Of a stretch of 64,000 nt of DNA, positions 1 to 63,449 are shown piece after piece; the first letter of the stretch is position 1; the number at the start of each line of letters is the position of its first letter. The translations under genes were made by a program, and so were the position numbers. This DNA comes from Sphaerodactylus townsendi (Eukaryota): NCBI RefSeq assembly GCF_021028975.2, contig NC_059429.1:38998001-39062000 (forward strand). The letters are read 5' to 3'. The notes under the pieces are model-generated. The model was not told where the DNA came from, made no database searches, and saw only the letters and a list, made by a program, of their open reading frames with translations.

Positions 1-190
1 TATAACTCTGGACTAAGATAATTGATGATACTTCCAAAGAGAAAGAGACTATACCCTATTCTGAGTGAGCCAGAAGCAACTAATTTTTAGTTGACGGAAG
101 AAGATAATTTTTGTACTCTCCTCCACCAAAGATATATGAATCCTTTGGTGATTAAACAGTTATTCAAACACTACTTTTTGTAATGACCTT

Positions 191-614
191 AGCGCTTTCC
201 GCAGGGGGTCAATAAATTTGGGATAACCATGGTAAAAAACCCACTGCGGGTGGAAACTTCGCACAGTTCCTGCCCTTAACATAAGCCTGACCCATATTAT
301 TTCCTCCAAAACAGGATATTCAAGAATCACACTATCCACAATTCTTTTAAAAAATCCCAGGTTGCAGCCACTTCCAAATGAATGGACAGGCAGGAAAGTG
401 GTTTTTTGGCTGCATGTTCCGTTAAAAAATTTTCCCCAGTGCCTATCTGCGTAGCCATGCAGGTGCAAAGGGTTGTGATGTCAGATAGCATGGCTATGGG
501 GGGGTCAATTTGCTTGCTGACCACATGACAGCCAGCCATGCAAAGGTCTGGGGCTATGCTGGGTTCATTTATCCTGATTGCAACCCATGTTACATTTCAT
601 GTGCGGAAAGGGCC
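191..614. mobile_element. Harbinger/PIF-like non-autonomous DNA transposon
   Basis: Ends agcgctttccgca ... tgcggaaagggcc form imperfect TIRs. Related ends occur at ~7415, 15922-16439 and 25686-26209. Confidence 0.55.
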
Positions 615-741
615 CTTGAAAGTATTTGCTAGAGTTTTTTTTTAAAAACCAGTGCATGAAACAAAGCTCAGGATGACTAAAGCAGTTTCAGAATCAGGGT
701 TCAACTGCTGCTGAATTCACAAGCAAACTAGTTGACCTAAT

Positions 742-858
742 CTATATAAGAATAGTGTGGCGACTGATGATAAAGTCCAGTAAAATAAGCCCAATATATA
801 TCAGGAACAACGTAGCACTGGGAAAAGAGCAGTTTAACTCTTCTCCTTGCAGGATATC
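742..858 (-). CDS. Candidate terminal coding exon with hydrophobic C-terminus (GPI signal or TM): DILQGEELNCSFPSATLFLIYIGLILLDFIISRHTILI*
   Basis: Acceptor gcattttttaatcag|; reads in phase 0 to TAG at 742-744; hydrophobic stretch LFLIYIGLILLDFII. No polyA signal was seen within the window. Confidence 0.5.
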   Translation of the reverse strand, partial: DILQGEELNCSFPSATLFLIYIGLILLDFIISRHTILI

Positions 859-1335
859 CTGATTAAAAAATGCCCCCTCCTGGTTGCTTTTAGCCTTGGC
901 AGGAAAACAACTGGGGCGATTATTGTGCCTGTCTTTTCCTCCTGTTGGTGTTAAAAGGAGCCTAGAGACTACACTCAAACAGGTAACAGCACAAGGAGGG
1001 GTGTTACCAGCCCTTCCACATATTGTCCCTTTTTGTGTGACTATTTTTGAGGTTCCAGAAATACCTGGGGAGAGTCAGCTATTTGTCCCTGTCACAGGAC
1101 AAGATCCCAAGCTTATCTTAATGTCTCCTGAACACTGAGACACTTGCATTGCAATCCCATATGGTTAATCCAGGCTAAATCCACTGAAATCAGTGTTCTT
1201 AGACTGGAGTAACTTTGCACAGGATTGCACTGTTAGTCTGTAAACTAAGACTAATCTGAAAACAATAAAATGGTTACAGGCATTAACTATTACTGTGATG
1301 GTATATATGCTAAAAAAAAAAAGATTAAGTCATAC

Positions 1336-1368
1336 CTGGCTCTGTACTTTGCTGCCATATTGAGTGCT
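1336..1368 (-). CDS. Micro-exon 15 (33 nt, phase 0): STQYGSKVQSQ
   Basis: ctgtttcccctgcag|...CAG|gtatga. Confidence 0.8.
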
Positions 1369-1744
1369 CTGCAGGGGAAACAGATTTGCTTGCGTTAAGG
1401 TCTAGAGCAGAGCTTTGACTGCAGTACTGCAGGTTATCACTCTGCACCACGGGTCATTTACTACCCCTCAGTAACACCAAGTAGTAAATTAATATTGGAT
1501 ATAAAGGACCATGGTTTCATTGAGGCAACTATTCTTCAGAGATTTACACTAGCTAAAATTCTGGGATATTTCATGTTCCTGAGGATTCGACAGTAATTCC
1601 AGTTCTTAGAAAGTGAACCACTGGATTTAAACCGTAACTTTGCTAATCTTTTCTCACTCCACTCCTCAGTTTACACCTTACAATGAAGACTCTATTCTAG
1701 TGGTCCTAAATCTGCTCTAAATAAAGTAGGAAAAGAATGCTTAC

Positions 1745-1777
1745 CTGAATATGCTTATAGTGAGAGTTGGCAAGTTG
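1745..1777 (-). CDS. Micro-exon 14 (33 nt, phase 0): QLANSHYKHIQ
   Basis: gatttctttgtag|...CAG|gtaagc. Confidence 0.78.
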
Positions 1778-4017
1778 CTACAAAGAAATCAAAATTAATT
1801 TTGTTCCATATGTCCACACACAGATTAATTATTGTCATACCTGTAGTGTTATACTATGAACATGATTGGGACATAGTAGCCAGGGAATGTTCCTTCCCAA
1901 AACAAACAAGATGATAATAGCACAGACCAATAGATCTGTTCATAGGAGGTACCCAGCAGGGATCTGAGCAAATTTGAAAATTTCGGATTTTCCTGGTTGA
2001 CATGCTCCCTAGACACTTCTCTGCTTTAGGGTAAAACCTGTTAGCCTCTGTGTAAAAGCTACTGGCAATGGAAAATGCTGTGAAGTCCTAGTCTATTTTC
2101 TGCCACCCCTCGAGGAGTTTTAAAGGCAAGAGAAAAACAGAGGTGGTTTGCCATTGCCTTCCTCAGCACAGCAAACTTAAGCTTCTTTGGTGGACGTCCA
2201 TGCAAGTACTAATCAAGGCCAATACTGCTTAGCTTCCAAGATCTGATGAGATCAGGGTTCATTTGCACAATTTGAGTTGCCTTATCTCAGAAAGATCTTA
2301 GAGAGCTGGGAAAAATGCAGAACAGTACAACCAACAGCATTAAGTGGGCTGGAGCATTTTCCTATGAGGAAAATCTGAAGATTCTTGAAGCCAATAGTGT
2401 ACCGCCACAAAACAGTGCCTGCCTCAGCCGAACTCCATGCTGAATTCCTTCCCACCTCCTCCATTGCTGCACTGCTACCCCTGCAAAAAAACCACAACCC
2501 TTTTCATCCGCCTGAGTGGCACCGGTCAGCAACACACTTTGAGTTTGTCTGGGTGCAGCTGTGCAAGCAGATCTGCAAGTGGCAGCAGGCGAGTTCAGCT
2601 AGGTGTGGCAAGGGGAGCAAATGGCCTGGTGGACCAGGCCATATGAGTAGGGGGCAAGCAGCATGGGCCATGCGAGCAGGGCAAGTACAGTTGGGGGCAG
2701 GGAGCAAGCGGTATGGGAGGCTGGGTGAATGGGGGGCAAGCAGCGCAGGCCATGCGAGTGGGGCAGGTGAGCAGGGTGGACTGGGCAAGCAGCAGCAGGT
2801 GATTTTGGCTGAGTGCAGGGGGGGTCTGTCCCCTTTTGCCCCCTAGATATGCCATTGCTTGAGGTTTCAGTTTAGGGAAGGAAAGGCTAACATGTATACA
2901 ACTGGATGGGAGAAAAGGAGGATTTTTTTCCTATAATACCACAACTTGGACAAACCCAATGAAATCGATCGACAACAAATTCATGGCAGACAAAAGGAAG
3001 TACTTCCCTCAACAAGTAATTTAATTGTACAACTCACTGCCAGTGAACAAAATGATGGACAATGGCATAGACAGTTGCAATGGCATAGACAGTTGCAAAA
3101 GGTATCAGCTAGATTCATGGAGGTTAGGTTGACTCATCAATAAGTGAGCACTAACTGTGATAACAACAGGTTGATCTTATTAGTTATGATGGCTAAAGGG
3201 AACCCCTTTCGGTTGCCCATCTCTAGGGAGTGGCTGGAGATCTGTTGTGATTGCAGAGACAGAGGTCAGTTCCCCTGGAGTAAACAGCCACTTGACTGTA
3301 TGGAATTATACCCCACTGAAGTCCCACCATTCCCAAACTGTGTCCTCCTCAGGCTCCACCACAAAAATTCCCAAGCATTTTTGAACCAGGAGCTGCCAAC
3401 TCTAAAACCTCCACACCTAGAAACCATAAATCTTGGAATACGAGTGCTAGGAGACAACAGCAGGCCTCTATGACCTGTTTGGTGGCCCTCCAGGCAATTG
3501 ATTGGCATGTAAAACAGAACAGTGGGCTATATGGACCACTGGTCTGATCTAGCAGGATATTCTCATACTTGCCCTAGCTAGACAGTCTGTATTATTAGCT
3601 TGCACATGTTTAATATGACAGATGTGTATGTGTGTGAGCGGAATGAAACATAAGCTCTTTCCCATATTCTAGCACAATTAAAGTATACATACCAGAGAGA
3701 CTGGAAAAATGGCATATCATAAAGGCCAATTTCCACATTTCCCAATCATATAATAACTCTTGAAAACATAAGGTGTGAATTTTATGCACATAATGTATTG
3801 TTCCCTATCCAACTGAAAATTTAGAATGAAAGCAGTGTCAGAAAACAATTGTAATGTATCCACGCATTATATGTCAATAGATATCCAGACTTGTAAAAGA
3901 CACTTGGGCACAGATTTCATTGCAGGAATAATTGTATGACTAGATAAGCTAATATGTAAATTGACCTGAGTAGGTTAAAACACAACAAAAAACTAAACAA
4001 AAACAAAGTATCCTTAC

Positions 4018-4035
4018 CGCAGTGATTGATGTACG
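4018..4035 (-). CDS. Micro-exon 13 (18 nt, phase 0): RTSITA
   Basis: gttctctttacag|...GCG|gtaagg. Confidence 0.7.
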
Positions 4036-4218
4036 CTGTAAAGAGAACATATGGCTCATAAGTTTGTCAAATAAGTATTTTTAGAAAGGCTACATCTGAC
4101 AAGAAAGCAAAGAATCAGCAACTTTCACTTTGATGCTCATCTGAATGTCACATTCATTAAAGCTTTAAGGCATACTATAGGGACAAAATAATGAATAGAG
4201 TTTTGTAAAGGAACTTAC

Positions 4219-4257
4219 TTCTGGTGGGTAGGGGTTGCTAGGAGGATGCTGAAAAGT
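4219..4257 (-). CDS. Micro-exon 12 (39 nt, phase 0): TFQHPPSNPYPPE
   Basis: ttttgtttttttggcag|...GAA|gtaagt. Confidence 0.75.
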
Positions 4258-5604
4258 CTGCCAAAAAAACAAAACACCCAAGTTTAAATAGTTTTGAAAT
4301 TAAATCACAGAATGTTTTTTATTGTACTGATTGATTCTGCTTGCTATATTTTGATTCAGCAAATACGGAATGCATGAAAGTAGAAATGTAACAAAGAGAA
4401 AAAGAAATTTCAGCTAAGAAAAAAGCCCCTCCCCACCCAAGCCAGACTATTCAGAAACTCAGGTTTGTCTCTTGCAGCTGGAAAATAATCAGAAAATTAA
4501 GAGGAAAAGTAAATCAATAAACCTGAAACAATTATTGTTCCCTTCTTTCTCCAAATACTGAAGTATAATAAGTTTTCTCAAGTAGTTACATTTTACAAAT
4601 TAAGGGTATATTCCAATTAGATAAGTTATAATTTTGAAATGGCAGCCAGTGGGAAGAGACTATTATATCCTAGCAATCAACAGGATGGAGGGCTTGCAGC
4701 ATTCTGAGATTCTGATCCAACTCTAGCTGGGCTGGGCCCAACCATTATCAGCATCACTAGCTGATAAATAATTATAATATTGAATGAACACTGTGAGGCA
4801 GGTAAAAGTGCATGTTTTGCATCGACATGGTAGCATATGTGAATGACTTCTTCTGTAAGTGCATCTTTCTTGCTGAATTGTGGGGGTGGAGAGAGAGATG
4901 GAAAAGGCAATGCGCCAATGGTTGTTGCTGCACCAGACTTACAGTGCCAACATTAGCAGAGTTACACCCTCTGACTTCAATGGGCTTAGAAGGGTGTAAC
5001 ACTGTTTAGGTGTAACACTGTTAGTCTAGTTTCAGATCTTGCAACTTCAAGGTGCTGTGTCTCTACAAGGCTCACATCCTATGTGTTACAGTGATTGTCA
5101 AAATGTTTTATGTAAAGGGTCATTAGTAGGTAGTATTGGATCAACTCAGCTACCTGGGTGCACAACAGCATACATTGCACAGTTTGAACTGGGGATGGGG
5201 GCGGACATTCAGCCTCCAGATACAATTAATACCTTAAGCCTGTCCTGAAATTAGTAGTGGGGAATGGGGCCAATTTCATTTTATCCAAATCCCTGGAGCC
5301 TCTGCTTTGAGGGCCATGGTGCTCTTCTCAATTATATTGCATCAATTTAGATATTTCATTTGGGGCATAACATTATAAGACCTTCTCCTGTTTCCACTTC
5401 AGTGTTCAACCCCACAGTGAGCCTTTAGGAGAATCTCTCAACAGACATTGGTCATAATGGGGAGCTTTTCATCTACTTAGCTCACAATGAAACTTCTAAG
5501 GGAATGTCTTGAAAAACACATTGTAGGGATTTCACATGCAGAAAAAAGCCCTATGAAACCCTATGAAGAAATATTTTAATATTTTGGTTAGAAAAAGTAC
5601 ATAC

Positions 5605-5634
5605 CTTTTTGGTATCTGACACAGTTGACACAGA
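5605..5634 (-). CDS. Micro-exon 11 (30 nt, phase 0): SVSTVSDTKK
   Basis: ctgttttctttatag|...AAG|gtatgt. Confidence 0.75.
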
Positions 5635-6262
5635 CTATAAAGAAAACAGAAACCCAATATTGATATTTTGTTCATTAGGAAGGCTGTGGCAGGCAGAGGG
5701 ATTCAAGAAGCAGTGTTTGTCTTCCCTTGGAGTCACATGTACCTTTTTTGGAAGTTTGTTTCATACTTGGCAACCTGGTAATCATTTAATCAAAACACCT
5801 TAGGGGTAGGACTGGCACAATACATAGTACTTTGGGAAACTGTGCTTTGAAAAACTATGTACATGCAAGTTGTCACATGCATGTAGATCTTATTCAAAGG
5901 ATCACAAAACATTTGATGGAAAAGGAGAGGATGCTAGTGATCTACTCCAGTTTCTTACAACCTGATTGCAGGCTTTGCATTTGCTTATATTTTTTCCTCT
6001 TGCAATACATTGGGCATGCTGGACTGTAGCCAACCTACAATATGCCTGTTACTATTCCTCTTTCTGAGCATTCTCGGAACAAAGCTAGAGCAAATGGTAG
6101 TGAACCATAATATGGAGTACTGTAGCACAGTCAAGAGTAATTAACATTATGTCCCTCTATTAAACTACATTAATGCAGCTTGAAATAACACAAAGAACTG
6201 CTTTTTCAGACTGCTGTGGTCTAAACCAAGATAAGTGGCCAGAGGTGGTATCTACTTACACA

Positions 6263-6650
6263 TCTAATTGATTCACTCCATTTCACAATCTGGATGAAAC
6301 AGGCTAGTGGGTGGCTGCAGCTCCTCTTCCTGCACTAGGGACTGAACTACTTTTGAGGTTCTGTGTATGATACTCCCAGAATCCCAGATGCTTTTGAGGT
6401 GGGGGGAGAGAACATGATCCTGTCTGCAGGCAGGATAGCTTCCCCTTCCTTGCTTTCCCAACTCCTGCCAGGGTTGGGAAGCAAGGGGGGATGGGAGAGA
6501 ATGCCCTCCTGCCTGGCCTGGCACTGGCCCACCAAATTCCCAGCCCATCCTCCCCCCACCCCAAAGAAGCAGCAGTGCCCGGCGGGGCATCTCAGTCCCC
6601 TGCTCACCCTCACCACCTCACCCTATTACCACAGCAGGCTTTACTGCTAG
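6263..6650 (+). mobile_element. Short non-autonomous Helitron-like element
   Basis: a|TC start and ggctttactgCTAG|t end, identical to the 3' end of the element ending at 49574. The 5' boundary is uncertain (6251 or 6263). Confidence 0.5.
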
Positions 6651-6815
6651 TGCTGTTATAATTTAGTAAAAGATCTGCGCAGGAGAAAATTCTGTAAGTT
6701 CAAGTATGTGTTTTTAAAAATCTGTCAACTATGGTAACACTTAATGTATCTTTTAGCCTTTAAGATGCCACTAGAATTAGTGCTGGCGTTGATATTATAG
6801 ATAAAGTATCCTTAC

Positions 6816-6851
6816 CTGCCCATATGAGCTGCTACTGTACGCTGTACCCCC
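6816..6851 (-). CDS. Micro-exon 10 (36 nt, phase 0): GGTAYSSSSYGQ
   Basis: gttttatttgtag|...CAG|gtaagg. Confidence 0.85.
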
Positions 6852-7092
6852 CTACAAATAAAACATACCTCCTTTTATTTATTAGCTAAAATAAGAAATC
6901 AACAAAGTGGCCCTTATTAAGATGCATAATTATATCAATTAAAATTTAACAGTTTGGATGGTAACTCGGGGGATTAATCTAGGCTTGTTCTAGAAAAAAG
7001 AGGTCCAATCTTTGGGGGGGAAACTCTATAGAGGTTATCACAGTATTTCTTTAAAATTTAAATTGCTACCACATTTGTGCATAAATTGCACC

Positions 7093-7290
7093 TAAGGTTG
7101 CCATCTTCTGGATGGAAAATATCAAACATTTGGGGTTGGAGCCTCTGGATGGTGGGATTTGGGGAAGGAAGAGACCTCAATGAGGTATAATACCATAGAG
7201 TGGACTCCCTAAAGCAGCCATTTCTTGTGTTTGAATTTCAGTCATAACTTTGGCAGATCTCCAGCCACCACCTGGAGATTGGCAACCCTA
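7093..7290. mobile_element. hAT-type MITE (TAGGGTTGCCA termini)
   Basis: taaggttgcca ... tggcaacccta; degenerate 8-bp flanks attgcacc/cttgcaac. A related copy lies at ~11300-11480. Confidence 0.6.
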
Positions 7291-7414
7291 CTTGCAACAT
7301 ATATCAATGTTTACATGTACATTTACGAACTAGACCCAGTCAGTTAGAAATTCTGCTAGTGGAAGGAGTGCCATCAGCAAACTGCAACTTCTTTCTTGCT
7401 TCTCTCCCACTGTA

Positions 7415-7870
7415 TGGCCCTTTCCGCACGGTGGCGGAAATGAGCCTCCACTGGCATAATTTATGCTGATGGAGGCTCTGGGACCATTTGCACGCTAGCG
7501 TGCAAGCGGTCCCCACTCCCCCCCCAGATGGAGAGGGGGTCAGCCCCCTCCACTCACTGTCATGTCCAGCGTCACCCTGAAGGGCTGCAGGGACCCGCCC
7601 ACACTGCCCTCCGACCTCCAGGGGTCGGAAGGCAGCACGGGCGGATCCCTGCAGCCCTCCAGGGCGATGCTGGACATGACAGTGTGTGGAGGCGACGGGG
7701 GAAGCAGCGTCTTCCCAGCGGTGCGGTTTGCACCACGCCACTGGAAAGACGCTCCTTTGCAAAAACCTTGCTTGTTTTGTGAGGTTAAAAGCGGCGGCTT
7801 CACACCACTTTCGGGCGTTTTTGCCGTCCCTGGGCTGCTGTATACCGCCCGTGCGTTAAAATGCACCTCT
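7415..7870. mobile_element. GC-rich Harbinger-like MITE with a long internal hairpin
   Basis: Starts ggccctttccgcac. The internal inverted repeat 7555-7684 runs cactgtcatgtccagc...gctggacatgacagtg. Confidence 0.5.
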
Positions 7871-8042
7871 GAAATATTGCTCTCTAGGGGAAGGGGAAAC
7901 CCAGGAACAGAATGAGGGAGGAACTGGAGGTCTACAGTGAGAGAGAGGAATTAACAAAATCACTTCCCCTTCCAAATACTCTATAGGATCCAATTCAATA
8001 TATTTCGATCGATACTTTATTAATTACATTAACCTTATAGCA

Positions 8043-8280
8043 TAAGGTGACCAGATTGTCACCTTTGTAAGCCGGGACCTGGGCAGGCGGGCGGCTGCGC
8101 GGGCATGCACGCGCAGCCGCACTGCCTTCTGGGGCGCACCCAGTTTCCCGCCCTGAGCGCCCCAGAAGGCAGTGCGGCAGCCTTCCAAAAACCGGGACAG
8201 TTGAAAAAACCCGCAGGACGCAGGACAAATTGTTTTAAGGTGGGACTGTCCTGCCAAAAGTGGGACGTCTGGTCACCATA
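8043..8280. mobile_element. hAT MITE with perfect 8-bp TSD
   Basis: TIR taaggtgaccaga/tctggtcaccata; TSD ttatagca at 8035-8042 and 8281-8288. Confidence 0.85.
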
Positions 8281-8674
8281 TTATAGCAGTCATTTCAACT
8301 TTGTGGTCTTTGTACCACTGCAAACTGTACAACAGGGATTACGACAAAGATTACACTTGCCATATTTTACCCTAAATTAGTAATTGATATGAAGTGAAAA
8401 ACAAACATAATATGTGAAAGTTATCTAGAATTTGTATCCTGGATGTTCTGAATTTTTATTTACAGAGAGGTTTTGCCTTTGGAAGCATTAAAAAGGTGAG
8501 TTTCCACCTGCAACCTGAAATGGTACAATCACATCTACCTTTCCATTCTGCTGCATGGACAGACCACACCAAGGTGTTTAGGAGAATACTTGTAGCAAAT
8601 ATGGTTGCTACCCAGCAGATGGAGTTGAGCTAATGACATCAGCCTTCCAAAATGCAAAAAAAAAAAAAACTTAC

Positions 8675-8716
8675 ATCACGGCAGCCATACTTGCTGTAGA
8701 CACTTGAAACTCCACC
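8675..8716 (-). CDS. Micro-exon 9 (42 nt, phase 0): GGVSSVYSKYGCRD
   Basis: ggttttttacacag|...GAT|gtaagt. Confidence 0.82.
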
Positions 8717-9717
8717 CTGTGTAAAAAACCAGAGAGTTGAATATTTTATTTTGCTTTGCTTCATAATGGAAACATGTCATAGTAAAAACGTTGATCAAAA
8801 GGAGGAGTGCCCAATGTTAGAGACTAAGTAAAATTGTATAAATATTTTGGCTTTGGCTTTTTTAAAACAGCAAAATGTAGTAGTGATTATTTTCTAAGAA
8901 GAAATGACCTGGGACTCAGTTAACTTCCCCAAGAACCACATCTGCTGATTTACAATGAAGTACTACCAAACTGAACGTAATCTTACCACACACTTGTAAA
9001 TGTGCACCTCTCTCTCCATGGTAATATAAGCAAGTTCTTTTATGGGCATTATATAGAAAGCAAGAGTCATGTGCAGACTCCCTGTCAGAACTTTAGTACA
9101 AGCAGAGATGAATGCCATCTATGGTTTCATAGAGGCAGGGAAAGGCACTTTATATAGGCTAAGCAGCCACCTCTGTACATTGCATTTCAAGGTTCACATA
9201 TTATCACAGCGTAGGTAGCATGATAGGAAATCTTTTTATTTATTCATACATTCATTTCAGTTTCTATCCCATTCTGCCCCATCAAATGTTTAAAAAATGA
9301 CAATAGTGTACCTGTCTGTGTGCATATACACAAATCTCCTGACTAGTGTCATTAAAGGAGAAAGTTTTTTATAGCACTCTGGAAAGTATTCAAGTTTTTA
9401 AGGAAGGGAGTCTCACAGTAGCGAGGAGGTAGCAATCGAGAATACCTTTTTACATGCCTTTTCCTGATTATGCAGAGAAAGGAAATAACAGGATGCCAGT
9501 ATAAACACTGGATTGCTGCTACAATGCACCTCCGGTTTCTAAACTGAGGCCATTTTGTATTAATCAAAGTAATGAACACCCGAAGTCCCACAATATCACC
9601 AAGGCTATAGTTTAACACAGTCTAAAAGCTGAAAGAAGAAGAAGAAGAAGACTTTATTTACAGTCAATGACCAGATGTATTACAAAGACTCCAAAGCTGA
9701 AAGAAGAATATGCTTAC

Positions 9718-9765
9718 ACCAGCGCAGCCACCCTTTTTGATTCCTCCTTGGTACACTGAACCATC
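9718..9765 (-). CDS. Micro-exon 8 (48 nt, phase 0): DGSVYQGGIKKGGCAG
   Basis: ttattttcttccag|...GGT|gtaagc. Confidence 0.82.
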
Positions 9766-10267
9766 CTGGAAGAAAATAAAATGGGTTATTTTTTTTAAGG
9801 CGCTTTGTTTGACGCATGACATAAAAGCCTGCAATCTATAGAAACACAATCCATCTACTTTGGAAAAAGGAACACGTATTTGAGAGTAATGGCTATGATC
9901 ACAGGGAGCAACATATCTACCAAGAAATCAGAACTTATTTGTTGTGATTTTAAAAAGAAGAATGAATTCACAAGAACACCCTGGTGAGGTTTTTGCTTTG
10001 CATGTGCACTAGAAGGAGAAAAAGATGGCATCCCCACATGTTCCCACTGGCCTTTTCATCTTCTGTTTCATTTCCCTAATACAGTAATTCACAATGGCTA
10101 AAAGTTGCCCACGACAACTTTATGGCAGTTCCCCCGAAGAAATAGTCCTGATTGTTGAGGATAATGTGACTTGCCAGCCTTAAAGAATTGGTAGCTTGAT
10201 TGATTTTTAGACCTATTATGCATTTTTTGAGACAGCTACAGAACACACATAAACAAGTGAAACTTAC

Positions 10268-10309
10268 CTGCCTGCCAGAATAAGAGCCAGACGAAGAACC
10301 CTGATATAT
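10268..10309 (-). CDS. Micro-exon 7 (42 nt, phase 0): IYQGSSSGSYSGRQ
   Basis: ctgattgttgcag|...CAG|gtaagt. Confidence 0.85.
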
Positions 10310-11066
10310 CTGCAACAATCAGATATTTATTTTTAATTTTCTGTTTTATTTTTTAAAACTGGGTTTCAAGGTCAGGGGAAGGTAAAAACTGATGGAAAGA
10401 AGAGTCTGTGCAAACATTTCGCAGTCTAAAGAAAAATAAATATTTGTTGTGGCAGATCATCCATAAGCAATCAGATGAGAGAGGAATTATATAGCATAGT
10501 ATTCAGTGAATGGTGTTATGGAAAATAAAACTGCAGTAGTGAGAACAAGAAGTTGGAGGCCCGCAAGAATGGGGAAGGGATGAACAAACTCCCACTTTAT
10601 AAACCTTCCCCAGGAGATTACTATAAGATCTTAGGAGCTTCAGCATGCCAATTATCTGTCCCCATTTTGTTTTCTATCCTTTTGTTAACTGATGCTCAGA
10701 TGCTGTCAAAATTCTACAGTCTTCAGGCCATTTTGTAATTTTTTCCCTGTTTAAAAAATTTACAAATTGAAAAGGCATAGGACAATCATATTTGCGAATG
10801 GAAAGACATAGATGAATAATACTAACAAAGAATCCAAAGAACAGTAAAAGAAGTGATAAAATTGTCATCAGGAGAGGTGGCATGATATAGCCCACTGCCA
10901 TCAGGTTTCAGAAGATAAGCAGGGTCAGTACTTGGAAGCAAGACAACCTCTGATTTTCACCTGCTTTGCTGGGATTGCCATAAGTTGGTTGCAACTTGAT
11001 GACACTTACATATGTACGTAAAAGTGTCATCGCATACATGGTAAATTTTTGAAAGGAATGACTTAC

Positions 11067-11102
11067 CTTGGTACATTCACTGCTGCTTGCATAACTGCCA
11101 CC
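11067..11102 (-). CDS. Micro-exon 6 (36 nt, phase 0): GGSYASSSECTK
   Basis: taactttcag|...AAG|gtaagt. Confidence 0.85.
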
Positions 11103-11822
11103 CTGAAAGTTATAAAAATAATGTTCTGGTAAAATTTCAGAAAATACGCACAATTTTTAGTGCCAGAACACTATGAGCAGTCAGGTTTCTCTTTACAGTG
11201 GCTTCAAAAGGTGCCAGCACCTCATGTTTCCTAATCCCCCTACTTCTTTGTAATGGCTAAATAGAATATTCGACTTGAGCCTGTTCCTGTGATCCTAGAC
11301 CAGGGTTGCTAGTCTCCAGGTCATGTCTGGAGATCTCCTGGAATTACATCTGATTGCTAGACTAGGAGAAAATGGCAGATTTGGAGGGAAGAGTCAATCG
11401 CATCATAAAGCCTGTGGTTTCCCTTCCTCAAACTCTACCATCATCAGGCACCGCCCCTGAATCCCCAAGAATTTCCCAAGGCGAATTTGGGAAACCTACC
11501 CAGGTCCAAGAGGGGGAAGATGTGCAAGTTCAATTTCAAGCATGCAAAGAAGTGTGGAAACATGAAGTGTGAATCACATTTCAGATCATGCTGTCCCCCC
11601 ATATCCTTATATCATTAAAGGTTTTGGCAAAGATGCCAGGATCAATTTGCATCAGTTATCTTGAGGTACCTTAAATATACATCTAACAGAAAAGTGTTGT
11701 CATCATGTAAGTGCCATTGTGCCAAGTTAACTTTACCCACACTCCAAACAATGGATTTAATGCAATCAAAATCAACTTGTAAATAACAGATGTATTGATA
11801 ATTAAAGTTCAAAAATTCTTAC

Positions 11823-11858
11823 CTGGCCACAGTTTATTCTTAGAGTAATACCTGCAGA
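11823..11858 (-). CDS. Micro-exon 5 (36 nt, phase 0): SAGITLRINCGQ
   Basis: ttttctttacag|...CAG|gtaaga; no stop; length a multiple of 3. Confidence 0.8.
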
Positions 11859-12590
11859 CTGTAAAGAAAACAAAATATCTGAATTATAATGAAAGGGACT
11901 CAAATTACAATTTATTCACGCTGGATCATCTTATTGACACGAAGCCAGTTCAAATGATAGACTGTCACAACAAATCTTTGAATATTTGATACATGACCAT
12001 GGTGGCAGTGTCATGAATCAGACACAGGTGCAGAAGAAAGCACCCCTCTCTACAGTTCTGGATATTGTGATCACAGCTGATTTGTCTTACGTAAAGCGCA
12101 GTTTTTCCAGTGCTTTTGTGTTCTTCATGTACATCAACACTTGGAGAATTGTATTAGTGCTACCCAAGCCCAAGAAGCGTAATCTTACATTTACTAGACT
12201 CCCAGCCAATATTAAGCACCTTTAACCCTCTGTTGAGTTTAAGATTTAAGCATCCAGTTAGCTATCACCCACGTTCAAGATGCATCCATAGACCTGGTGC
12301 TAAACTACTGGCATCAGAGTGAAGCTGTAAGTACATGATGTCTCTCTTCCCTACTTATATTGTAGCCCACTGAACTCTCTTTGCCCCAAATTCTGTTGCT
12401 GGAAATTAAGAAACAGCATGGCGGGCAAAGTGAGGGTCTGCAGTGGGAGGGGGGAAGACAAGGAAAACCACCATCTTCTCCTCCACCAACATAAAGCTGT
12501 GTTGCCAGCAAAACAGGGGAGCAACACCTTTGGTACCAAACCAGAATATGTAAAATGGAACATAATGGAGACCAAGTCATTTCAACAAAC

Positions 12591-12738
12591 CTTCTTCCTG
12601 CTTTTGGGTGATACTTGGGCTGATTGAGATTCACCAACAATTTTGGAATCATCTTCTGCCTCACTGAAATTTCTAGGAAAGAGGACGACACTGGGAACAA
12701 CAACCCAGTATGTTTCAGGGTCTTGAAAAATGGTTGCT
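12591..12738 (-). CDS. Coding exon 4, Reeler C-terminal strands plus linker
   Basis: Acceptor ttatcttttcag|, donor AAG|gtttgt (a stop follows if read through). 148 nt, phase 2 to 0. ATIFQDPETYWVVVPSVVLFPRNFSEAEDDSKIVGESQSAQVSPKSRKK contains the Reeler AT-x-x-Q...YWV motif. Confidence 0.85.
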
Positions 12739-13770
12739 CTGAAAAGATAATAAATCATATTTTATTATGGTGATTATCTCCTATAGTGAAGCAAAGTCTA
12801 TGTTATGAAGGGGTTTGGGTTTTTTTAAGTTGCCTAAGGATGGGCATAGGGTTCCATTCAAAGCATATACTTTTCATGCAGAATGTCTCAGGTAAATCTC
12901 TGGCACCTCTAGTTTAAAGAAGATACTGAGTACAGGTGTTCAGAAAGCTCTTTTTCTGCCAGTTACCTTGGAGAACCAATTAGGGGAGACATTCATCCAT
13001 TCTGCACAGCACAAATAAGATGTCTGGAGGACATTTTAAAAGAGGCAACTTTTTTTGTCTGAACAGCACAAATAAGACATCCTGGGGACATCTTTAAAAA
13101 TCTGCCCTCTCATTTTTTTTGCCTGGACAGCACAAGCATCAGAGGAGAAATGAGGCTTTCCCCTCTCTGGTCAGTTTCCTCCTCAGCTTGTGCCTGACAT
13201 TTTGTGTGCTGCTGAAGGGATTCTCCCTGCCTCCATTTGCCCCATGATGTTAGCTCTGCAGGCACCAATCTGGGCACCTTTTCAGACCCCAAAAGCACAT
13301 AGTTGTACTCCACTTGTCCTGCCAATTCCGGCAATATATAGTTTTCCTATTTTTAATTCTTGATGAGGTGTCTGCAAAGCAACGCAGACATGCTATGAAA
13401 ATCTTAGCCACTTGGGTAGACCTTTTAGCATCTTCAAAATATGGTGGCTTGGGCTGAAATAAGGCATCCTGAGGACGTCTTGTGGAAAAAGTGTGTAGAG
13501 TTCCTCCACAAGATGCCTTCTTTTGCATCCTCAGGAATTCTTATTTGACTGTGACGAATGGACCATTATTTAGCTAAATAGGCTGATGAAAACTTCCTAT
13601 TTCAACTCATGTTTACCAAAAAATGCAAAATGAATTATGCATGTTACGCTAAATTTTATTTATCTATATTAATCACTTCCATTATATCACATGATATCAA
13701 ACTATTTGAAATAATAATCCCACTAAGTTACAAACATCCTTCTCATTTGCTAGTTTTTTCTTCCTATAAC

Positions 13771-14056: not shown

Positions 14057-14145
14057 ATAAATTGAATAGTTTTAGCATCAGGTGAAACCCAGTGTGCTGT
14101 TACGTCCTGTTTCGTATCCAAGTTTGTTTGAATTAATGCTGAATT
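14057..14145 (-). CDS. Coding exon 3, Reeler domain
   Basis: Acceptor tctttaatttcaaag|, donor AT|gtaagt. 89 nt, phase 0 to 2. NSALIQTNLDTKQDVTAHWVSPDAKTIQF(I) contains the Reeler K-x-x-V-x-x-x-W-x-x-P...I-x-F pattern. Confidence 0.9.
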
Positions 14146-17371: not shown

Positions 17372-17508
17372 TGAAAGGTTGTAACAGTCAAGGCTTTGCG
17401 TGTTTGGATCTGTGATCTGAAATGAACCAACTGGAATGTTTTCTTCAATGTCTCGAGCCTGTAGCATAAACCATTTAAATCCAACATCAGGTGTTCCTTC
17501 TATTTTCA
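17372..17508 (-). CDS. Coding exon 2, Reeler domain core
   Basis: Acceptor cttctccag|, donor TCA|gtatgt. 137 nt, phase 1 to 0. (V)KIEGTPDVGFKWFMLQARDIEENIPVGSFQITDPNTQSLDCYNLS matches the Reeler F-x-G-F-x-LQAR...VGSF...C pattern. Confidence 0.92.
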
Positions 17509-18730: not shown

Positions 18731-18870
18731 NNNNNNNNNNNNNNNNNNNNNNNNNNNNNNNNNNNNNNNNNNNNNNNNNNNNNNNNNNNNNNNNNNNNNN
18801 NNNNNNNNNNNNNNNNNNNNNNNNNNNNNNNNNNNNNNNNNNNNNNNNNNNNNNNNNNNNNNNNNNNNNN
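18731..18870. other. Assembly gap (N run); further gaps at 51609-51744, 61388-61548 and 61839-62085
   Basis: N characters. Confidence 1.
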
Positions 18871-21044: not shown

Positions 21045-21240
21045 CTTTTACTTCTTTTCCTGGGTCATATTCATCTGATGATACAGAAATGTGATAGGGT
21101 GATTCGGATTCCTGTGGTTCTACAGAGTGGTTTGGCAACATCGATTCACAAGCTAGTGAAATATTCCCATATGGAAGGCAGCAGACTCGTGTGACGAAGA
21201 CCCCACAGAGCAGAAATGAAAAGAAGAGAATGTGCTTCAT
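21045..21240 (-). CDS. Coding exon 1 of a Reeler-domain (FRRS1-like / defense protein-like) secreted protein: signal peptide and Reeler N-terminus
   Basis: Acceptor gtttgtttcag|TCCAAG ATG (exon starts 21246). Translates MKHILFFSFLLCGVFVTRVCCLPYGNISLACESMLPNHSVEPQESESPYHISVSSDEYDPGKEVK: hydrophobic signal peptide plus the Reeler motif C-x-x-M-x-P-x-H...Q...SPY-x-I. Donor AAG|gtaaat, phase 1. Confidence 0.92.
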
Positions 21241-21290: not shown

Positions 21291-23055
21291 ACATAAGAAC
21301 ATAAGAACATAAGAACAAGCCAGCTGGATCAGACCAGAGTCCATCTAGTCCAGCTCTCTGCTACTCGCAGTGGCCCACCAGGTGCCTTTGGGAGTTCACA
21401 TGTAGGATGTGAAAGCAATGGCCTTCTGCGGCTGTTGCTCCCGAGCACCTGGACTGTTAAGGCATTTGCAATCTCAGATCAAAGAGGATCAAGATTGGTA
21501 GCCATAAATTGACTTCTCCTCCATAAATCTGTCAAAGCCCCTTTTAAAGCTATCCAGGTTAGTGGCCATCACCACCTCCTGTGGCAGCATATTCCAAACA
21601 CACCAATCACATGTTGCAAGTGAAGAGGTGTTTCCTTTTATTAGTCCTAATTCTTCCCCAGCATTTTTCAATGAATGCCCCCCCTGGTTCCTGAGTGTTG
21701 GCCGAGAAGAGAGAAAAATTTCTCTCTGTCAACATTTTCTACCCCATGCATAATTTTATAGACTTCAATCATATCCCCCCCCCTCAGACGTCTCCTCTCC
21801 AAACTAAAGAGTCCCCAGGCGGCTGCAGCCTTTCCCCTCATAAAGGAAGGTTGCTCCAGTCCCTCAATCATCCCTGCGTTTACCCTTCTCTGCACTTTTT
21901 CTATCTAGCTATATCCTTTTTTGAGGATGTGGTGACCAGAACTGAACACAGTACTCCAAATTGTAGGTGCGCTGCATAGTATTTATATAAAGGGCATGAC
22001 AATCTTTACCAGTTTAGTATCAATTCCTTTCCTGATTATCCCCACAGCATAGAGTTTGCCCTTTTTTTCACAGCTGCCATACATTGAGTTGACGATTTCC
22101 CATGGAACTATCAATTAAAGGCGTAAAATCCCTTTCCCTGGTCTGTGACTGATTAGCACTGACCCCTGTAAGCGATGTATGTGAAGTTTGGATTTTTTGC
22201 CCTATGTGCATCACTTTTGCATTTTTTTGCTACATTGAACTGCATTTTGCCATTTCTTAGCCCACTCACCCTAATTTATCAAGGTCCAGCTTGGACCTCC
22301 CTCATGAGAAATCCTTTGTGGTTCTCACCCACCCTACATGGTTTGGTATCATCTACAAACTTGGCCACTGCAGCTACCCACCCTACTTCCAGGTCATTTT
22401 ATGGAATAGGTTAAAGAGCACTTCGGGTCCCAATCACTACGGATCCTTGGGGACACCACTCCCACATCTCTCCATTGTGAGAATTTCCCATTTACACCCA
22501 CTCTTTGCTTCCTGTTTCTCAACCAGTTTTTTAATCCATGGGAGGGACTTCCCCTCTTATTCCCTTCATTTGCTGAGTTTTTTTTTTTTTCTCCAATGAG
22601 TCTCTGGTGAGGAACTTTGTGTCAAAAAGCCTTTTGGAAATCAAGTAGACAATGTCCACTGGTTCCCCATATCCACATGCCTATTTACATCCTCAAAGAA
22701 CTCTAGTAAGTTTGGCAAGACAGGATTTTGCCTCTGCAAAAGCCATGCTGACTCTTTTCTCAACGGGTTTTGCTTTTGTACACATCATTTTTATAATTTT
22801 TATCTTTAATGACAGATTCTACTAATTTACCAGGAACAGATGTCAAACTGACTGGCCTGTAATTTCCCGGGTCCCCCCTAGATCCTTTCTTAAAGATTGG
22901 TGTGACATTGGCCATCTTCCAGTCTTCAGGGATGGAGCCTGATTTCAAGGATAAGTTGCATATTAAAGTGAGAACATCAGCAATTTCATGCTTGAGCTCT
23001 TTAAGAACTCTTGGGTGAATGCAATCTGGGCCAGGGGATTTGGTAGCATTTAGTT
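21291..23055 (-). mobile_element. 5'-truncated CR1 LINE (RT domain and 3' UTR)
   Basis: (ATAAGAAC)n tail at 21291-21316. ORF remnant IPEDWKMANVTPIFKKGSRGDPGNYRPVSLTSVPGK is the canonical CR1 RT N-terminus. Confidence 0.95.
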
Positions 23056-23382: not shown

Positions 23383-26300
23383 ACCACACTTAGCTGAAGA
23401 GCTGAAAGAAGTAAGGGGTGGAAAGGAAAGCAACAGTGTAGGCAAGCTTCTAACCCACAGCCAAGCCCATAGGGATATCAGGAGCATCACAAACTCCCTC
23501 TGCTCTGCCTGTGCCACTTGTGACACCAGTGCTGCAGGCTGGTCATTTGCATTAATACAACATTGTGCTGATACACCATATGCAAGCAAAATCTATTTCT
23601 TATGGAAGTGAAGTTAAACTATCTTGATAGGTAGACCATTTTCTTAAAGTACCATTAAATTGGTTTCTCCTTAAATCTGATTCAAATGCAACAGTCTGCA
23701 TTGACTGAAATCTGCACTATTTGCATTGATTTCATTCCACAGCCTGTTCTGGTTATCATCATTCATGCAAGAATGGCATGCAAGAGTCCCAGTGCAGTCA
23801 GGTATGAAAACCAGTCCTCCTCAATCATTAGAATTTTGGTGCTCCAACATAATAGGTCAGTGGGCTACTTCCAATCCTGCCAACATGTGTTGTCACCATT
23901 TCGTATGAATGGGGCAATCCACATATTTTTCCAATTTCAGTATGCACATCCATAAAAGTTTGAGTTTCTGGTTACATACAATGAGGCTGGAAGTCATGTA
24001 TTGCCCTATTCATGCTCAATGATAGCCATACCTATCAAGAGGCAATGATGACATGGCACAGAAGACAAGTATCATTTTAGGTTTTATCATTCAGACCATT
24101 GTGAATTTCCTACCACTCTGTTCAGAAAACTAAGAAACCCTCTTCCAGTTTAAGGAGCTTAAAAGACAGAAGTTGGAGGAAAGTTCCTAAGGTTCAAAGA
24201 AGGTTTGAACTGGCAAGAATGTTGTTCTAACCAAAGTTTGTTAATTATTGTTTTAGAAATTATAGTTTCTATGAAGTGTACTCTTGTAATTGACAGCAAG
24301 CCAACATGAATTCTAAGAGGGCAACTGAGTGCGGTATTTCACCTTCAATGAATCATGCTCATTTTTTGTTGAGGTTTTGTTATCTATTGGGACTTACACC
24401 TACCTAGAACCTGGATTGACATGTTGATTCAGATCCCATCTACTTCCTTTAAAAGAGTCCATAATTACAAACTCAGATTAAGTATAGTCTTTCTCCATCC
24501 CTTTCAATTTCACAAACATACTTTGACCAAGTCAATATTCAGTTAAAGTATTTCAAGACATGGAAGCAAGGGACTATTTTGTATAAAAATCCCACAGAAA
24601 TAAGGGAGCTCTGATATGTTGACACCAGCAAGAAAAAATAGAATACAAAATATCATAGGAAAAAAGGCTTTTGATCCTCTTAACCATGAATGGACTACAA
24701 GGACTGTGTTGCTCCCATTTCCCACTGAAACTTCTTTACTCTCCCTCAAAGCCATCACGGCTCTTCAGGAACAGCACATGATGTGGTGTAGGTAGAGCTC
24801 AAGAGTGGAAATTCTTCTCTGTGTGAACTCATGCTTCATCTGTCCAAAAAACCTTATGCACAGTCTGTTCTGGTTAACATCATTCATGCAACTCCACCAC
24901 TCCAGCATCCCAGCTAGTTCTCAGCATTCCTCACTTTTGGAAGCAGCTCGGGGGGTCCTGGGGGATGGGGAGTTGGCTGCATCCCTTCTATAAACTCATT
25001 CACAGTTCATAGCATCAAAATCTATTTCCTGATTTCACTCTTGTTTGTATTCTATGTATGTCCTGGATTCTACATCCACTGGTAAGGCATATAAATGTTT
25101 TAAGTAATAAATAATAACAATAATATTCGAGGTACAACTCTGCCCATTCCCTACAGGCTTGCCCACACAGATTTTTAGGAGAGGTGGGAATAACAGAAAG
25201 CCAGATAGTATCTTGGATAGTATTCATTCAGTATACTGATTTATTGTATTCCCATAAGCTTCCTGAGAGGCATGTGTCTCACTTCCACTAGTTGTCCACA
25301 TAGCAACAAGCACATGCTTTTCAGTCTGATCTACCTAGAAGACATTGCCTGCAATTTCAGTACTAAAGTATAGATGCTCTCCTAAAGAAATTCCTATGTC
25401 GGGAGAATCTATGAAACTGTCAAGCAGTCTGCCCCATACTAATTAACTATCTGGTGTGCTCCAGTGAAGTTAAAATAAATTATTTCCTCTGCTATAGTCA
25501 AATAGAATCATTGTAAATTCAGGGGTGGGGGGGAAGCATGAGTCAATCTTGCTTCCTATTTCTGAACTTCTTTTTATAATTTTTTAAATGCATGCTTAGC
25601 TGTCTTGTCAGAGATTCTAGAAGAGTAGCTGTGTACATCTGTCGCTCCAAGTAAACTAGGAGTCCTGTGCCATCTCAAAGACTATGGCCCCTTCTGCACG
25701 GGTCAATAAACCAGGGGTAACAACTGGATAAAATCTGTTTTGGGGGGAACTTCACACGGTTCCCACACCGCATAAGCTGCTGGGAATCCACCCACATTTC
25801 ACCCCCCCCCAAAAGGCCATTTTGAGGGTATTGCTATTCTTTGTGAGATTGTTAATGTGGGTTGCAATACTGCATGCAGTGGCAGCACTTACTTTTCCCC
25901 AGTCCCTGCATGCCTCTCTGCTGTGAAGCTATGCACCAGGGGCACAGGGAGGCAGCAACAGCTGTAGCTGTGGAGGGTCCAATGCCTGCCTGGCCCATGG
26001 CTTCTGTAAGCAGAGAGGAAGGGTAATTAAGAGATGGAGGTGGTCAGAAGCAGCCCTCCATGTGAAGGTGCATCGGGAACCCGTATTGCCTCTGCTGGCT
26101 CCATTCCCTGCCTGCACAGAGGCATGTGAGCATCCCAATGACAATGCTCGGTTTGCTACCCCGACACAAACCGCCATGTACACTTTGCCTGTCTTGGAAG
26201 GGGGGGCCTATGAAAGCAATCCTAAGCAGCTCTACTCAGAATGCTGCTCAGGACTATTCAGTGGGGCGTGCTACCTGGATAGTGTTCTTAGGTATCTGGG

Positions 26301-27577: not shown

Positions 27578-27796
27578 ATAAGGCCTTTTTGCCATCAAGT
27601 TGCAACTGACTCATAGTGACCCCTCATGGGGTTTTCAAGGCAAGAGACTCACAGAGGTGGCTTGTCATTGCCTGCCTGTGCATAGCAACCCTGGTATTCT
27701 TTGGAGGGCTACCATCTGAATACTAATCAGGGCTGACCCTGCTCAGCTTCCAAGACCTAACAAGATCTGGCCAGCCTGAGGTATCCTGGTCAGGGC
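27578..27796 (-). mobile_element. 5S rRNA-headed SINE with a Sauria/BovB-like tail
   Basis: Reverse complement of gatcttgttaggtcttggaagctgagcagggtcagccctg plus ggcaggcaatgacaagccacctctg. Other copies at ~2100-2260 and 53710-53890. Confidence 0.65.
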
Positions 27797-61400: not shown

Positions 61401-63449
61401 NNNNNNNNNNNNNNNNNNNNNNNNNNNNNNNNNNNNNNNNNNNNNNNNNNNNNNNNNNNNNNNNNNNNNNNNNNNNNNNNNNNNNNNNNNNNNNNNNNNN
61501 NNNNNNNNNNNNNNNNNNNNNNNNNNNNNNNNNNNNNNNNNNNNNNNNAAATGTCAAAAATTATTTGCAGCTCCAAGTGTTTTCTTTTCCCATGGAAAAC
61601 AGGTCCAAATGGCTCTTTGAGTGTTAAAGGTTCCCTACGCCTGATTTAGAATATTACATAAACTTTGGTGGTAAACCATATATATATGTTTTTTTTATCT
61701 TTTACTCTGCCCATTCTGAGAAGTGCATGGATGCGCCTGCCCTGCTGCCTGCAGGGCGGGCAAGGATGGGGCCGGCGGCTCGGCTCGTGGAGCCACAGCG
61801 CAAGGGCAGAAGAGCCGCATGCGGCTCTCGAGCCGCAGNNNNNNNNNNNNNNNNNNNNNNNNNNNNNNNNNNNNNNNNNNNNNNNNNNNNNNNNNNNNNN
61901 NNNNNNNNNNNNNNNNNNNNNNNNNNNNNNNNNNNNNNNNNNNNNNNNNNNNNNNNNNNNNNNNNNNNNNNNNNNNNNNNNNNNNNNNNNNNNNNNNNNN
62001 NNNNNNNNNNNNNNNNNNNNNNNNNNNNNNNNNNNNNNNNNNNNNNNNNNNNNNNNNNNNNNNNNNNNNNNNNNNNNNNNNNNNNCAAATTGGTTCCTTT
62101 TCAGTAGCTGGGTTTTTTTTTTAATGTTCAGACAAAATGTTGACAGATTCAGTCCTGGATTTCTAATTTAACAGTTCATTGATCCTAAGCTTCTTTGAGC
62201 ATTATTTTCATCATACTGTTATGACTGTCAATGTAACACTGTATTCGGGAATTGTTGGCATACTGAGGAGATGACTTTGATGCCAGTCTTTGGCATGGCC
62301 ACAGACTCACAGAGCACAGGAAGGAGAACTGTTGAGGAATTGCTAGGCAGCTGCACAATATCTCAGGTGTGTTTTTGTCTCCTTCCTGTAGCAGGTACCT
62401 ACAAAACTTGGGTGTGGCTAGTTCTATTGTTTTTAGTCTGCAACTAATTGACAGTGACTGCAACTCATCAGCCAGCTATGGAATCCTGAACCAGCCCAAG
62501 ACATCATTTATTGTTTTGTTGGTGTGACATAACTAAGCAGAGGCAAACAGAATATAAAGAGTTCACTACAGGAGTATGAATAAGAGAGAAAGAGAGAGAG
62601 AGAAATAATTTCTGATTGGCTGGAGAGAGTGCCTGTTAATCAGTGAGTGGTTATTTTGAACAGAAAAGACAGTTGGAAGAGGGCTTTTTTGAGAGGCAGA
62701 GATTGAGTGAGCAACTCTGTACCTTCTGAGGAGATTGTCAGACAGATGTGGCTGGTCTAATCTATGTTCCCTTGTTGCAGTTTAACACAGACACACAGGG
62801 ATATTGGTCATCTTTGGGGAAAATACATTGTTGGCAAGAGGCAGTGAGGCTTCTTATTCAGTCAGTACCCAAAAAGGTAAGGGATTCTTCTGAGGGTCAG
62901 AAGGAAAAATCCTGACCATAATCCATGTGAATAAGGAATAATCATGTGGTTATGGTAGATTGTCCTTAGTCTGGTGTTAGGCAAAACTGCTAAGATTTTA
63001 CTTTAGAGTAAATATATTCTCTCAAACTATATAGTGATGAAGGAATTCTGATAACTATAGCATCAGGAAGTGCACAGGATTTGCAGAAATCGATATTGTA
63101 GCTATAGCTGGTCAAATTGTATGAGTTTGCCTAACCATATAGGTTCCAACTCTTGATGATTAGTTACATGCTACTGATGAAATAATATCACTGTTACTTC
63201 CTTACCCTTGGTGGTGTCAGTTAACATTTATGAGACATTTCTGAGAAATATGTGAGGTTATTGAATGTGACAGTGGCAGAAGTTTTGAAATCATTATTTA
63301 TCTCGATGTTTCCTGGAAGGCTCTTATTTATATATATACCCATCCACACAGGTAGAAATGTGCTTTGTATATTGGTCAGCATCTAAAAAAAATGTCTATT
63401 GCTAGATTTTTCAGGATTTTTGGAGGATGCTTGAAATATAATCCCTACT

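Follow-up and report, generated by a model that had tools for sequence, protein, structure and literature searches.

In a 64,000-nucleotide stretch of the genome of Sphaerodactylus townsendi (contig NC_059429.1, positions 38,998,001 to 39,062,000; referred to here, in its full length, as the window), eleven short segments on the minus strand between positions 1336 and 11858 are, as judged by comparison with the sequences of relatives, genuine coding exons, namely exons 5 to 15 of one gene. The gene appears to be intact and to encode a protein in which a Reeler head is followed by a stalk built from micro-exons. A probability of roughly 0.85 is assigned to this reading.

The segments had been proposed in an earlier, sequence-only reading of the DNA, and all eleven were recovered at the claimed sizes, by reading the minus strand and by a script working from coordinates. 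The translations given for them were reproduced as well. Each acceptor consists of a pyrimidine-rich tract ending in AG, and the donor is GTAAG in nine segments and GTATG in the other two. All eleven lengths are multiples of three and all eleven segments are open in phase 0. It is likewise correct that the skipping of any unit would be neutral to the frame, as 11 of 11 are symmetric. Upstream of the micro-exons are four ordinary exons, also on the minus strand, each of which could be located in the window. Over exons 1–15, the start codon, the reading frame and the splice sites are kept in 15 of 15 (Table 1).

A control for chance occurrence was provided by a motif rule applied to both strands of the whole window. 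The rule called for a pyrimidine followed by AG after a tract with at least 10 pyrimidines in 15 positions, a GTAAG or GTATG donor, and an open segment of 18–60 nucleotides, divisible by three. Ten matches were obtained on the minus strand of the 10.5 kb region from 1336 to 11858, compared with approximately 0.8 expected from the rest of the window, where 117.5 kb (both strands) contained nine. Nine claimed exons, of which one shows a choice of two acceptors, make up the ten matches together with an unclaimed segment at 6289-6260. The claimed exons at 10309 and 6851 were missed by the rule, the sole failure in each being the pyrimidine-count threshold. The segment at 6289-6260 was considered as a twelfth exon and was treated as a chance match, as it has no counterpart in any orthologue.

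Homologues were identified using phmmer, with exon 1 alone as the query against 1.84 billion representatives; 45 proteins were returned. Each translated exon of the window was then compared separately with each homologue. In the best of these proteins the same short peptides follow the Reeler domain in the same order. The matches are collinear, unit for unit, in the UniParc-only sequence UPI00044192AB, in the proteins of Pantherophis guttatus and Anolis carolinensis and in the C-terminal half of a protein from the gecko Euleptes europaea. They are collinear in part in turtle, crocodile and crow, where micro-exons 5 and 8 serve as recognisable anchors. UPI00044192AB is 82% identical to the Pantherophis (corn-snake) protein. 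In a comparison extending over all fifteen exons, 266 of 319 residues (83%) are identical between the Euleptes protein and the window.

The sequence-only reading had suggested that the locus be aligned in other squamates, as a means of examining the conservation of splice sites and of lengths divisible by three, and had stated that segments no better conserved than the flanking intron would speak against it. Both properties are conserved in the DNA of Elgaria, apart from the acceptor of micro-exon 6, and in Pantherophis, and the exons are not refuted by this criterion. When 22 kb of the window was compared by blastn with the fetched Elgaria locus (L001), 13 blocks were obtained, of which 12 are collinear, and 11 of those 12 fall on exons (exons 1–4 and micro-exons 1, 2, 4, 5, 7, 9 and 10). 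The remaining two blocks are a non-collinear repeat and an intronic block upstream of micro-exon 3. For exons outside the blastn blocks, local alignments to Elgaria recovered the AG and GT sites and the lengths divisible by three; micro-exon 3 itself gave no DNA alignment to Elgaria in the local alignment. Codon position 2 is the least changed, at 0.30 and 0.24 per site versus 0.33–0.38 at positions 1 and 3. The intronic block just mentioned, of 81 nucleotides at 10413-10492, is 74% identical to Elgaria; no model treats it as an exon, and it may belong to a conserved element of the intron.

For Pantherophis guttatus, the RefSeq protein was mapped exactly, in spliced form, onto the fetched locus (L002). 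The gene comprises 54 coding exons across 84 kb. The micro-exons of the window are 36, 36, 42, 48, 42, 36, 30, 39, 18, 33 and 33 nucleotides in length. Exons 5–15 of Pantherophis, in the same order, measure 36, 36, 42, 51, 42, 39, 30, 39, 18, 33 and 33 nucleotides, and those of Elgaria, from the gene model and the DNA combined, 36, 36, 42, 48, 42, none, 30, 39, 18, 33 and 27. The differences in exon length between species are always multiples of three. It is apparent that the orthologues share one plan: a signal peptide, four Reeler exons whose phases are 1, 0, 2 and 0, and then the same eleven micro-exons.

Table 1. Coding exons of the Reeler-stalk gene in the window, listed in the direction of transcription
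Feature	Position in window	Strand	Properties and comparisons
Coding exon 1	21045..21240	-	ATG, signal peptide and start of Reeler; ends in phase 1; Pfam Reeler 28.7 bits; exon 1 block in Elgaria
Coding exon 2	17372..17508	-	Reeler core; phase 1 to 0; Pfam Reeler 24.6 bits; 82% DNA identity to Elgaria
Coding exon 3	14057..14145	-	Reeler; phase 0 to 2; collinear Elgaria block; 89 nucleotides, also in Elgaria and Pantherophis
Coding exon 4	12591..12738	-	End of Reeler, linker, conserved polybasic motif; GTTTGT donor; ends in phase 0
Micro-exon 1	11823..11858	-	36 nucleotides, phase 0-0; conserved Cys; 36 nucleotides in Elgaria and Pantherophis (their exon 5); 12/12 residues as in Euleptes
Micro-exon 2	11067..11102	-	36 nucleotides; conserved Cys; 36 nucleotides in Elgaria and Pantherophis; 12/12 residues as in Euleptes
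Micro-exon 3	10268..10309	-	42 nucleotides, also in Elgaria and Pantherophis; most divergent in sequence; 12/14 residues as in Euleptes
Micro-exon 4	9718..9765	-	48 nucleotides; conserved Cys; 48 nucleotides in Elgaria, 51 in Pantherophis
Micro-exon 5	8675..8716	-	42 nucleotides; best conserved stalk motif, recognisable in bird, crocodile and turtle; 14/14 residues as in Euleptes
Micro-exon 6	6816..6851	-	36 nucleotides; 39 in Pantherophis; in Elgaria acceptor AG absent and exon not in model
Micro-exon 7	5605..5634	-	30 nucleotides; 30 in Elgaria and Pantherophis
Micro-exon 8	4219..4257	-	39 nucleotides; proline-rich motif conserved to birds; 39 nucleotides in Elgaria and Pantherophis
Micro-exon 9	4018..4035	-	18 nucleotides; 18 in Elgaria DNA and Pantherophis; counterpart in lacertid paralogue annotated as cassette exon
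Micro-exon 10	1745..1777	-	33 nucleotides; 86% DNA identity to Elgaria, at a site beyond the annotated Elgaria gene end; 11/11 residues as in Pantherophis
Micro-exon 11	1336..1368	-	33 nucleotides; GTATGA donor; 33 nucleotides in Pantherophis, 27 in Elgaria DNA

The claim that the segments follow a Reeler protein was borne out by Pfam: PF02014 (Reeler) scores above its gathering cut-off of 21 bits on exon 1 and again on exon 2 (Table 1), and PF02014 is the only domain in the precomputed Pfam content of the full-length orthologues. The structure was viewed through an AlphaFold model of the Elgaria orthologue, based on a 21-sequence alignment. That model contains a confident Reeler beta-sandwich of ten strands at about residues 30–165, with a predicted local distance difference test score (pLDDT) above 90 over roughly residues 40–160. 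The stalk is predicted to be disordered, because pLDDT is below 50 through the whole micro-exon part of the model.

From exon 5 onwards the protein is of low complexity, rich in Gly, Ser, Tyr and Gln, with scattered conserved cysteines. Conservation from gecko to crow is seen for four of these (micro-exons 1, 2, 4 and 5), and a polybasic motif is situated exactly at the boundary between exon 4 and micro-exon 1 in all lineages. The donor of micro-exon 11 is GTATGA, from which it follows that the gene does not end within the window; exons 1–15 are carried here and the remainder extends past the window start. The corn snake indicates what may follow. After its exon 4, 47 of 49 exons are multiples of three in length and 45 of 49 are 60 nucleotides or shorter; many of them contribute a single Ser/Gly/Tyr/Gln repeat. 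A hydrophobic segment is specified by the last exon, and the turtle and crow proteins end in the same manner. The sequence-only reading had described the array as a tail. Judged by the orthologues, it would instead form the initial fifth of a stalk made of about 50 micro-exons, with the hydrophobic C-terminus lying beyond it. The only exons after exon 4 of the snake that are not multiples of three are exons 44 and 45 (62175-62208 and 71246-71355 of the fetched locus). Their splice sites are poor and their sequence is atypical, so that an error of annotation within the array is probable. Window positions 1-1335 contain no counterpart of exon 16 of the snake. A short terminal exon directly after 1336 was considered and rejected, as the implied intron would be only about 25 nucleotides.

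The suggestion that the array grew by exon duplication holds for one part of it and not for another. Distal repeat exons of the snake are alike into their introns (e.g. exon 29 with exon 32 and exon 30 with exon 33), and tandem duplication of exon-plus-intron units is therefore indicated. Among the eleven exons of the window, on the other hand, DNA similarity (exon plus flanks) is barely above that of an intronic control, so that any common origin of these exons would be old. Loss of units is also seen. At 21400-22560 of the Elgaria locus the counterpart of micro-exon 6 is without an acceptor AG, and the Elgaria protein lacks this exon; by this comparison it is a lineage-specific loss of one unit of the stalk. 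With every unit in frame, the stalk is altered by whole exons or whole codons.

A maximum-likelihood tree was constructed from the Reeler parts of the homologues. A sauropsid clade is split from the FRRS1 group with support of 100/99, and is made up of turtles, crocodile plus birds, a squamate clade A and a squamate clade B. The opposite group contains FRRS1 proper together with short fish and frog forms, which on this evidence would be relatives of FRRS1 or fragments of it. The C-terminal half of the Euleptes protein is placed in clade A with support of 100/100. Because the window gene is 83% identical to that half, it is assigned, on sequence grounds, to clade A, and represents the 'A' paralogue of squamates in a family whose members, as found here, are all from sauropsids. 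No mammalian protein was present among the 45 phmmer matches, and no direct comparison with REELD1 was made.

The Euleptes protein (P0060) is a head-to-tail fusion in which residues 1–494 represent the B paralogue and residues 495–799 the A paralogue. As this model fuses a B gene and then an A gene, the two paralogues are probably tandem neighbours in geckos. In Podarcis the accession numbers of the paralogue and FRRS1 proteins are consecutive, and neighbouring genes are therefore suggested there. Homology searches of the window revealed neither paralogue B nor, elsewhere in the window, FRRS1. When two lacertid FRRS1 proteins were used as tblastn queries, only Reeler exons matched, and DOMON and cytochrome b561 exons were not found in the window. 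Between 22000 and 64000 neither the Reeler gene nor FRRS1 has a relative, and none of eight long open reading frames has a Pfam match; by these results, few genes appear to lie upstream of the Reeler gene.

As the sequence-only reading had noted, read-through of exon 4 meets an in-frame TGA; it is situated two codons past the donor, in Elgaria as well as in this gecko. The donor hexamer, GTTTGT, is identical in gecko, Elgaria and Pantherophis, and the in-frame stop after it is not kept in the snake. Approximately 22 nucleotides of intron right after this weak donor (12569-12590) are near-identical in gecko and Elgaria. They could represent a splicing-control element, or could permit a short, Reeler-only product. 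A run of N is present in the window at about 18731-18870.

It had also been proposed that the locus is a combinatorial generator of isoforms, in which the eleven micro-exons are skipped independently of one another, in any subset, as in the schistosome micro-exon genes. All units are symmetric, so that such skipping would leave the frame undisturbed, and the predicted isoforms of relatives in RefSeq carry high numbers (X16 and X26–28 in Anolis carolinensis, X32 in Corvus kubaryi). Isoform pairs differing by single units are also found. In Zootoca, Lacerta and Podarcis, two isoforms of the paralogue are distinguished by the 7-residue counterpart of the 18-nucleotide micro-exon and by nothing else; in Anolis the differences amount to 12 residues and to larger blocks, and the isoforms of Pelodiscus and of gar each differ by one 13-residue repeat. 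Differences of a single Gln between isoforms suggest tandem acceptors. Free skipping of this kind is nonetheless considered unlikely. In the part of the protein matching the window, the only recurrent skip is that of the counterpart of the 18-nucleotide exon, and it occurs in the paralogue rather than in this gene, while the differences among Anolis isoforms are situated in distal repeat exons. Gnomon isoform numbers multiply a few local events. The nine strong GTAAG donors, with good acceptors, point to constitutive use. Moreover, the proposal draws on predicted isoforms of relatives, a run search for the present species having found no RNA run and only four DNA-like runs. A better reading would be that most of the eleven exons are constitutive in this gecko, with the 18-nucleotide exon the likeliest cassette. 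Constitutive use is favoured because the A-paralogue models, in the part matching the window, include every micro-exon present in the respective genome.

Much less probable is a decaying or silent copy, in which the visible exons are intact and the gene is broken downstream or is not expressed. About 39 downstream exons fall outside the window, the run search yielded no RNA for the species, and lineage-specific loss of an exon does occur, as with micro-exon 6 of Elgaria. Against this, the start codon, frame and splice sites are retained in every one of the fifteen exons, the nearest gecko protein is 83% identical over those exons, and the one exonic difference listed in the DNA runs is synonymous. 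That the segments are chance pseudo-exons, i.e. AG...GT pairs that arose fortuitously, either within an intron or past the end of a short four-exon Reeler gene that finishes by read-through at the TGA near 12582, is scarcely credible: the weak exon 4 donor with a stop two codons on in gecko and Elgaria, and the short Reeler-only models found in databases, are outweighed by a roughly ten-fold excess of motif matches over background, by conservation centred on exons across squamates, by an order and lengths that are the same in snake and anguid models, and by the fact that the read-through stop is not kept in the snake.

Several observations nevertheless weigh against an intact gene with a Reeler head and a micro-exon stalk. 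The 3′ four-fifths of the gene is outside the window, where only exons 1–15 can be read. Three of the DNA runs, over 6800-12790, are genomic contigs across the introns and have no splice joints. The orthologue models are automated predictions, of which at least two are faulty (truncation, fusion), and exons 44 and 45 of the snake are doubtful. Among micro-exon codons that differ from Elgaria, 50 differences are nonsynonymous and 16 synonymous, and the amino-acid constraint is thus weak. For this reason the conservation of the micro-exons may in part reflect splicing signals rather than protein sequence; as nonsynonymous codon differences exceed synonymous ones, what is retained is mainly the position of the splice sites together with exon length, composition and a small number of motifs. 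Finally, glycosylphosphatidylinositol (GPI) anchoring, cleavage, tissue and function are inferred only.

The DNA runs supplied some further details. The run of a relative differs from the window by about 1.8%. Among the 40 differences listed, one is in an exon; it is synonymous and is found in all three runs, and it yields nothing firm on constraint. At this position, 6846 in micro-exon 6, the window has A and all three DNA runs have G, so the window holds a minor allele or a base error. Word depth is very high in all three runs at 7200-8400, 9600-9800 and 10800-11400, which correspond to interspersed intron repeats. One intron repeat is a GC-rich element at about 7400-8250.

The names under which members of the family appear in RefSeq are of little help. 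The Pantherophis guttatus protein is called 'hornerin-like', and those of Anolis carolinensis 'hornerin isoform X27' and 'pro-resilin isoform X16'; the Elgaria protein is 'ferric-chelate reductase 1-like' and that of Euleptes europaea a LOC protein. Mucin-21-like and dentin sialophosphoprotein-like (DSPP-like) are also in use. These names mirror the composition or the head domain only, and are misleading and inconsistent. No published description of the gene or family was found in the literature when REELD1, LOC identifiers and the names were tried.

The belief that automated annotation misses exons of this kind is correct in certain species. In Elgaria the model comes to an end past the eighth micro-exon, in a doubtful last exon of 6 nucleotides, while counterparts of micro-exons 9–11 are present in the DNA with intact splice sites (23417-23434, 25745-25777 and about 27680-27741 of the fetched locus), at or past the annotated 3′ end; from these positions, the model looks truncated. 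The Euleptes model also ends after the eighth micro-exon. On the other hand, the models of Pantherophis and Anolis carolinensis, and UPI00044192AB, are complete, with all eleven exons. The sequence-only reading had known of no such architecture in a vertebrate Reeler protein, a view that the RefSeq and UniParc models of these relatives contradict. The exon array is therefore not new to public gene models; the gene is undescribed in the literature found.

A tentative picture of the protein may be drawn from these features. The product would be secreted and may be tethered to the cell surface through a GPI-type or tail anchor, with the Reeler head displayed on a flexible stalk whose Tyr and Cys residues would make it open to cross-linking. 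A possible convertase site is offered by the conserved polybasic motif that lies between the head and the stalk, where the protein might be cleaved. It is conceivable, although we regard it as more doubtful than not, that the protein is a surface-anchored, extracellular counterpart of the FUS-type Ser/Tyr/Gly/Gln low-complexity domain. The Reeler head would then have a binding role, and the length of the stalk and its capacity for cross-linking or condensation would be set exon by exon, by rapid gain and loss of exons between lineages and by alternative splicing within an animal, giving dozens of isoforms of an undescribed matrix or barrier protein.

Taken as a whole, the analysis turns a suspicion raised by raw sequence into a defined gene, one that is unstudied, fast-evolving and confined, among the proteins found here, to sauropsids. 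Among vertebrates it is a clean case of protein length being adjusted exon by exon, with a folded Reeler head and about 50 frame-neutral micro-exons. It should also be a useful test case for micro-exon-aware annotation, since the models of two relatives are visibly truncated or fused, for exon duplication and loss, and for the role of an extracellular stalk rich in Tyr, Gly, Ser and Gln. No change of paradigm is implied, the array being present already in the public models of relatives.

Among known systems, FRRS1 (SDR2) is the nearest outgroup by virtue of its Reeler domain, and the first two exons align with it at 43–45% identity; in the window gene, however, a micro-exon stalk takes the place of the DOMON and cytochrome b561 domains. 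In the schistosome micro-exon genes, for which extensive exon skipping is documented, as in the present gene, most of the coding sequence is contained in symmetric micro-exons, multiples of three in length, between ordinary terminal exons; skipping is frame-neutral and the product is secreted, as would be the case here. There is no homology between them, and the window gene is a vertebrate gene with a folded N-terminal domain and exons mostly of 30–60 nucleotides, in which skipping is only predicted. The fibrillar collagens (with their 54-nucleotide exons), elastin, the SCPP genes, dermokine and suprabasin likewise have modular phase-0 exons, each encoding one unit of a low-complexity secreted protein, and growth by exon duplication. 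The window gene differs from these in its Reeler head and in having no Gly-X-Y periodicity, and from the SCPP genes in its first three introns, which are in phases 1, 0 and 2, whereas SCPP introns are all in phase 0. Hornerin and the S100 fused-type proteins, to which some of the database names refer, share only a G/S/Y/Q-rich composition with the window gene, which has neither an S100 EF-hand head nor a single large coding exon (there are 54 exons in the snake). With insect pro-resilin, too, the likeness is limited to a G/S/Y/Q-rich composition, as the window gene is without the chitin-binding R&R domain.

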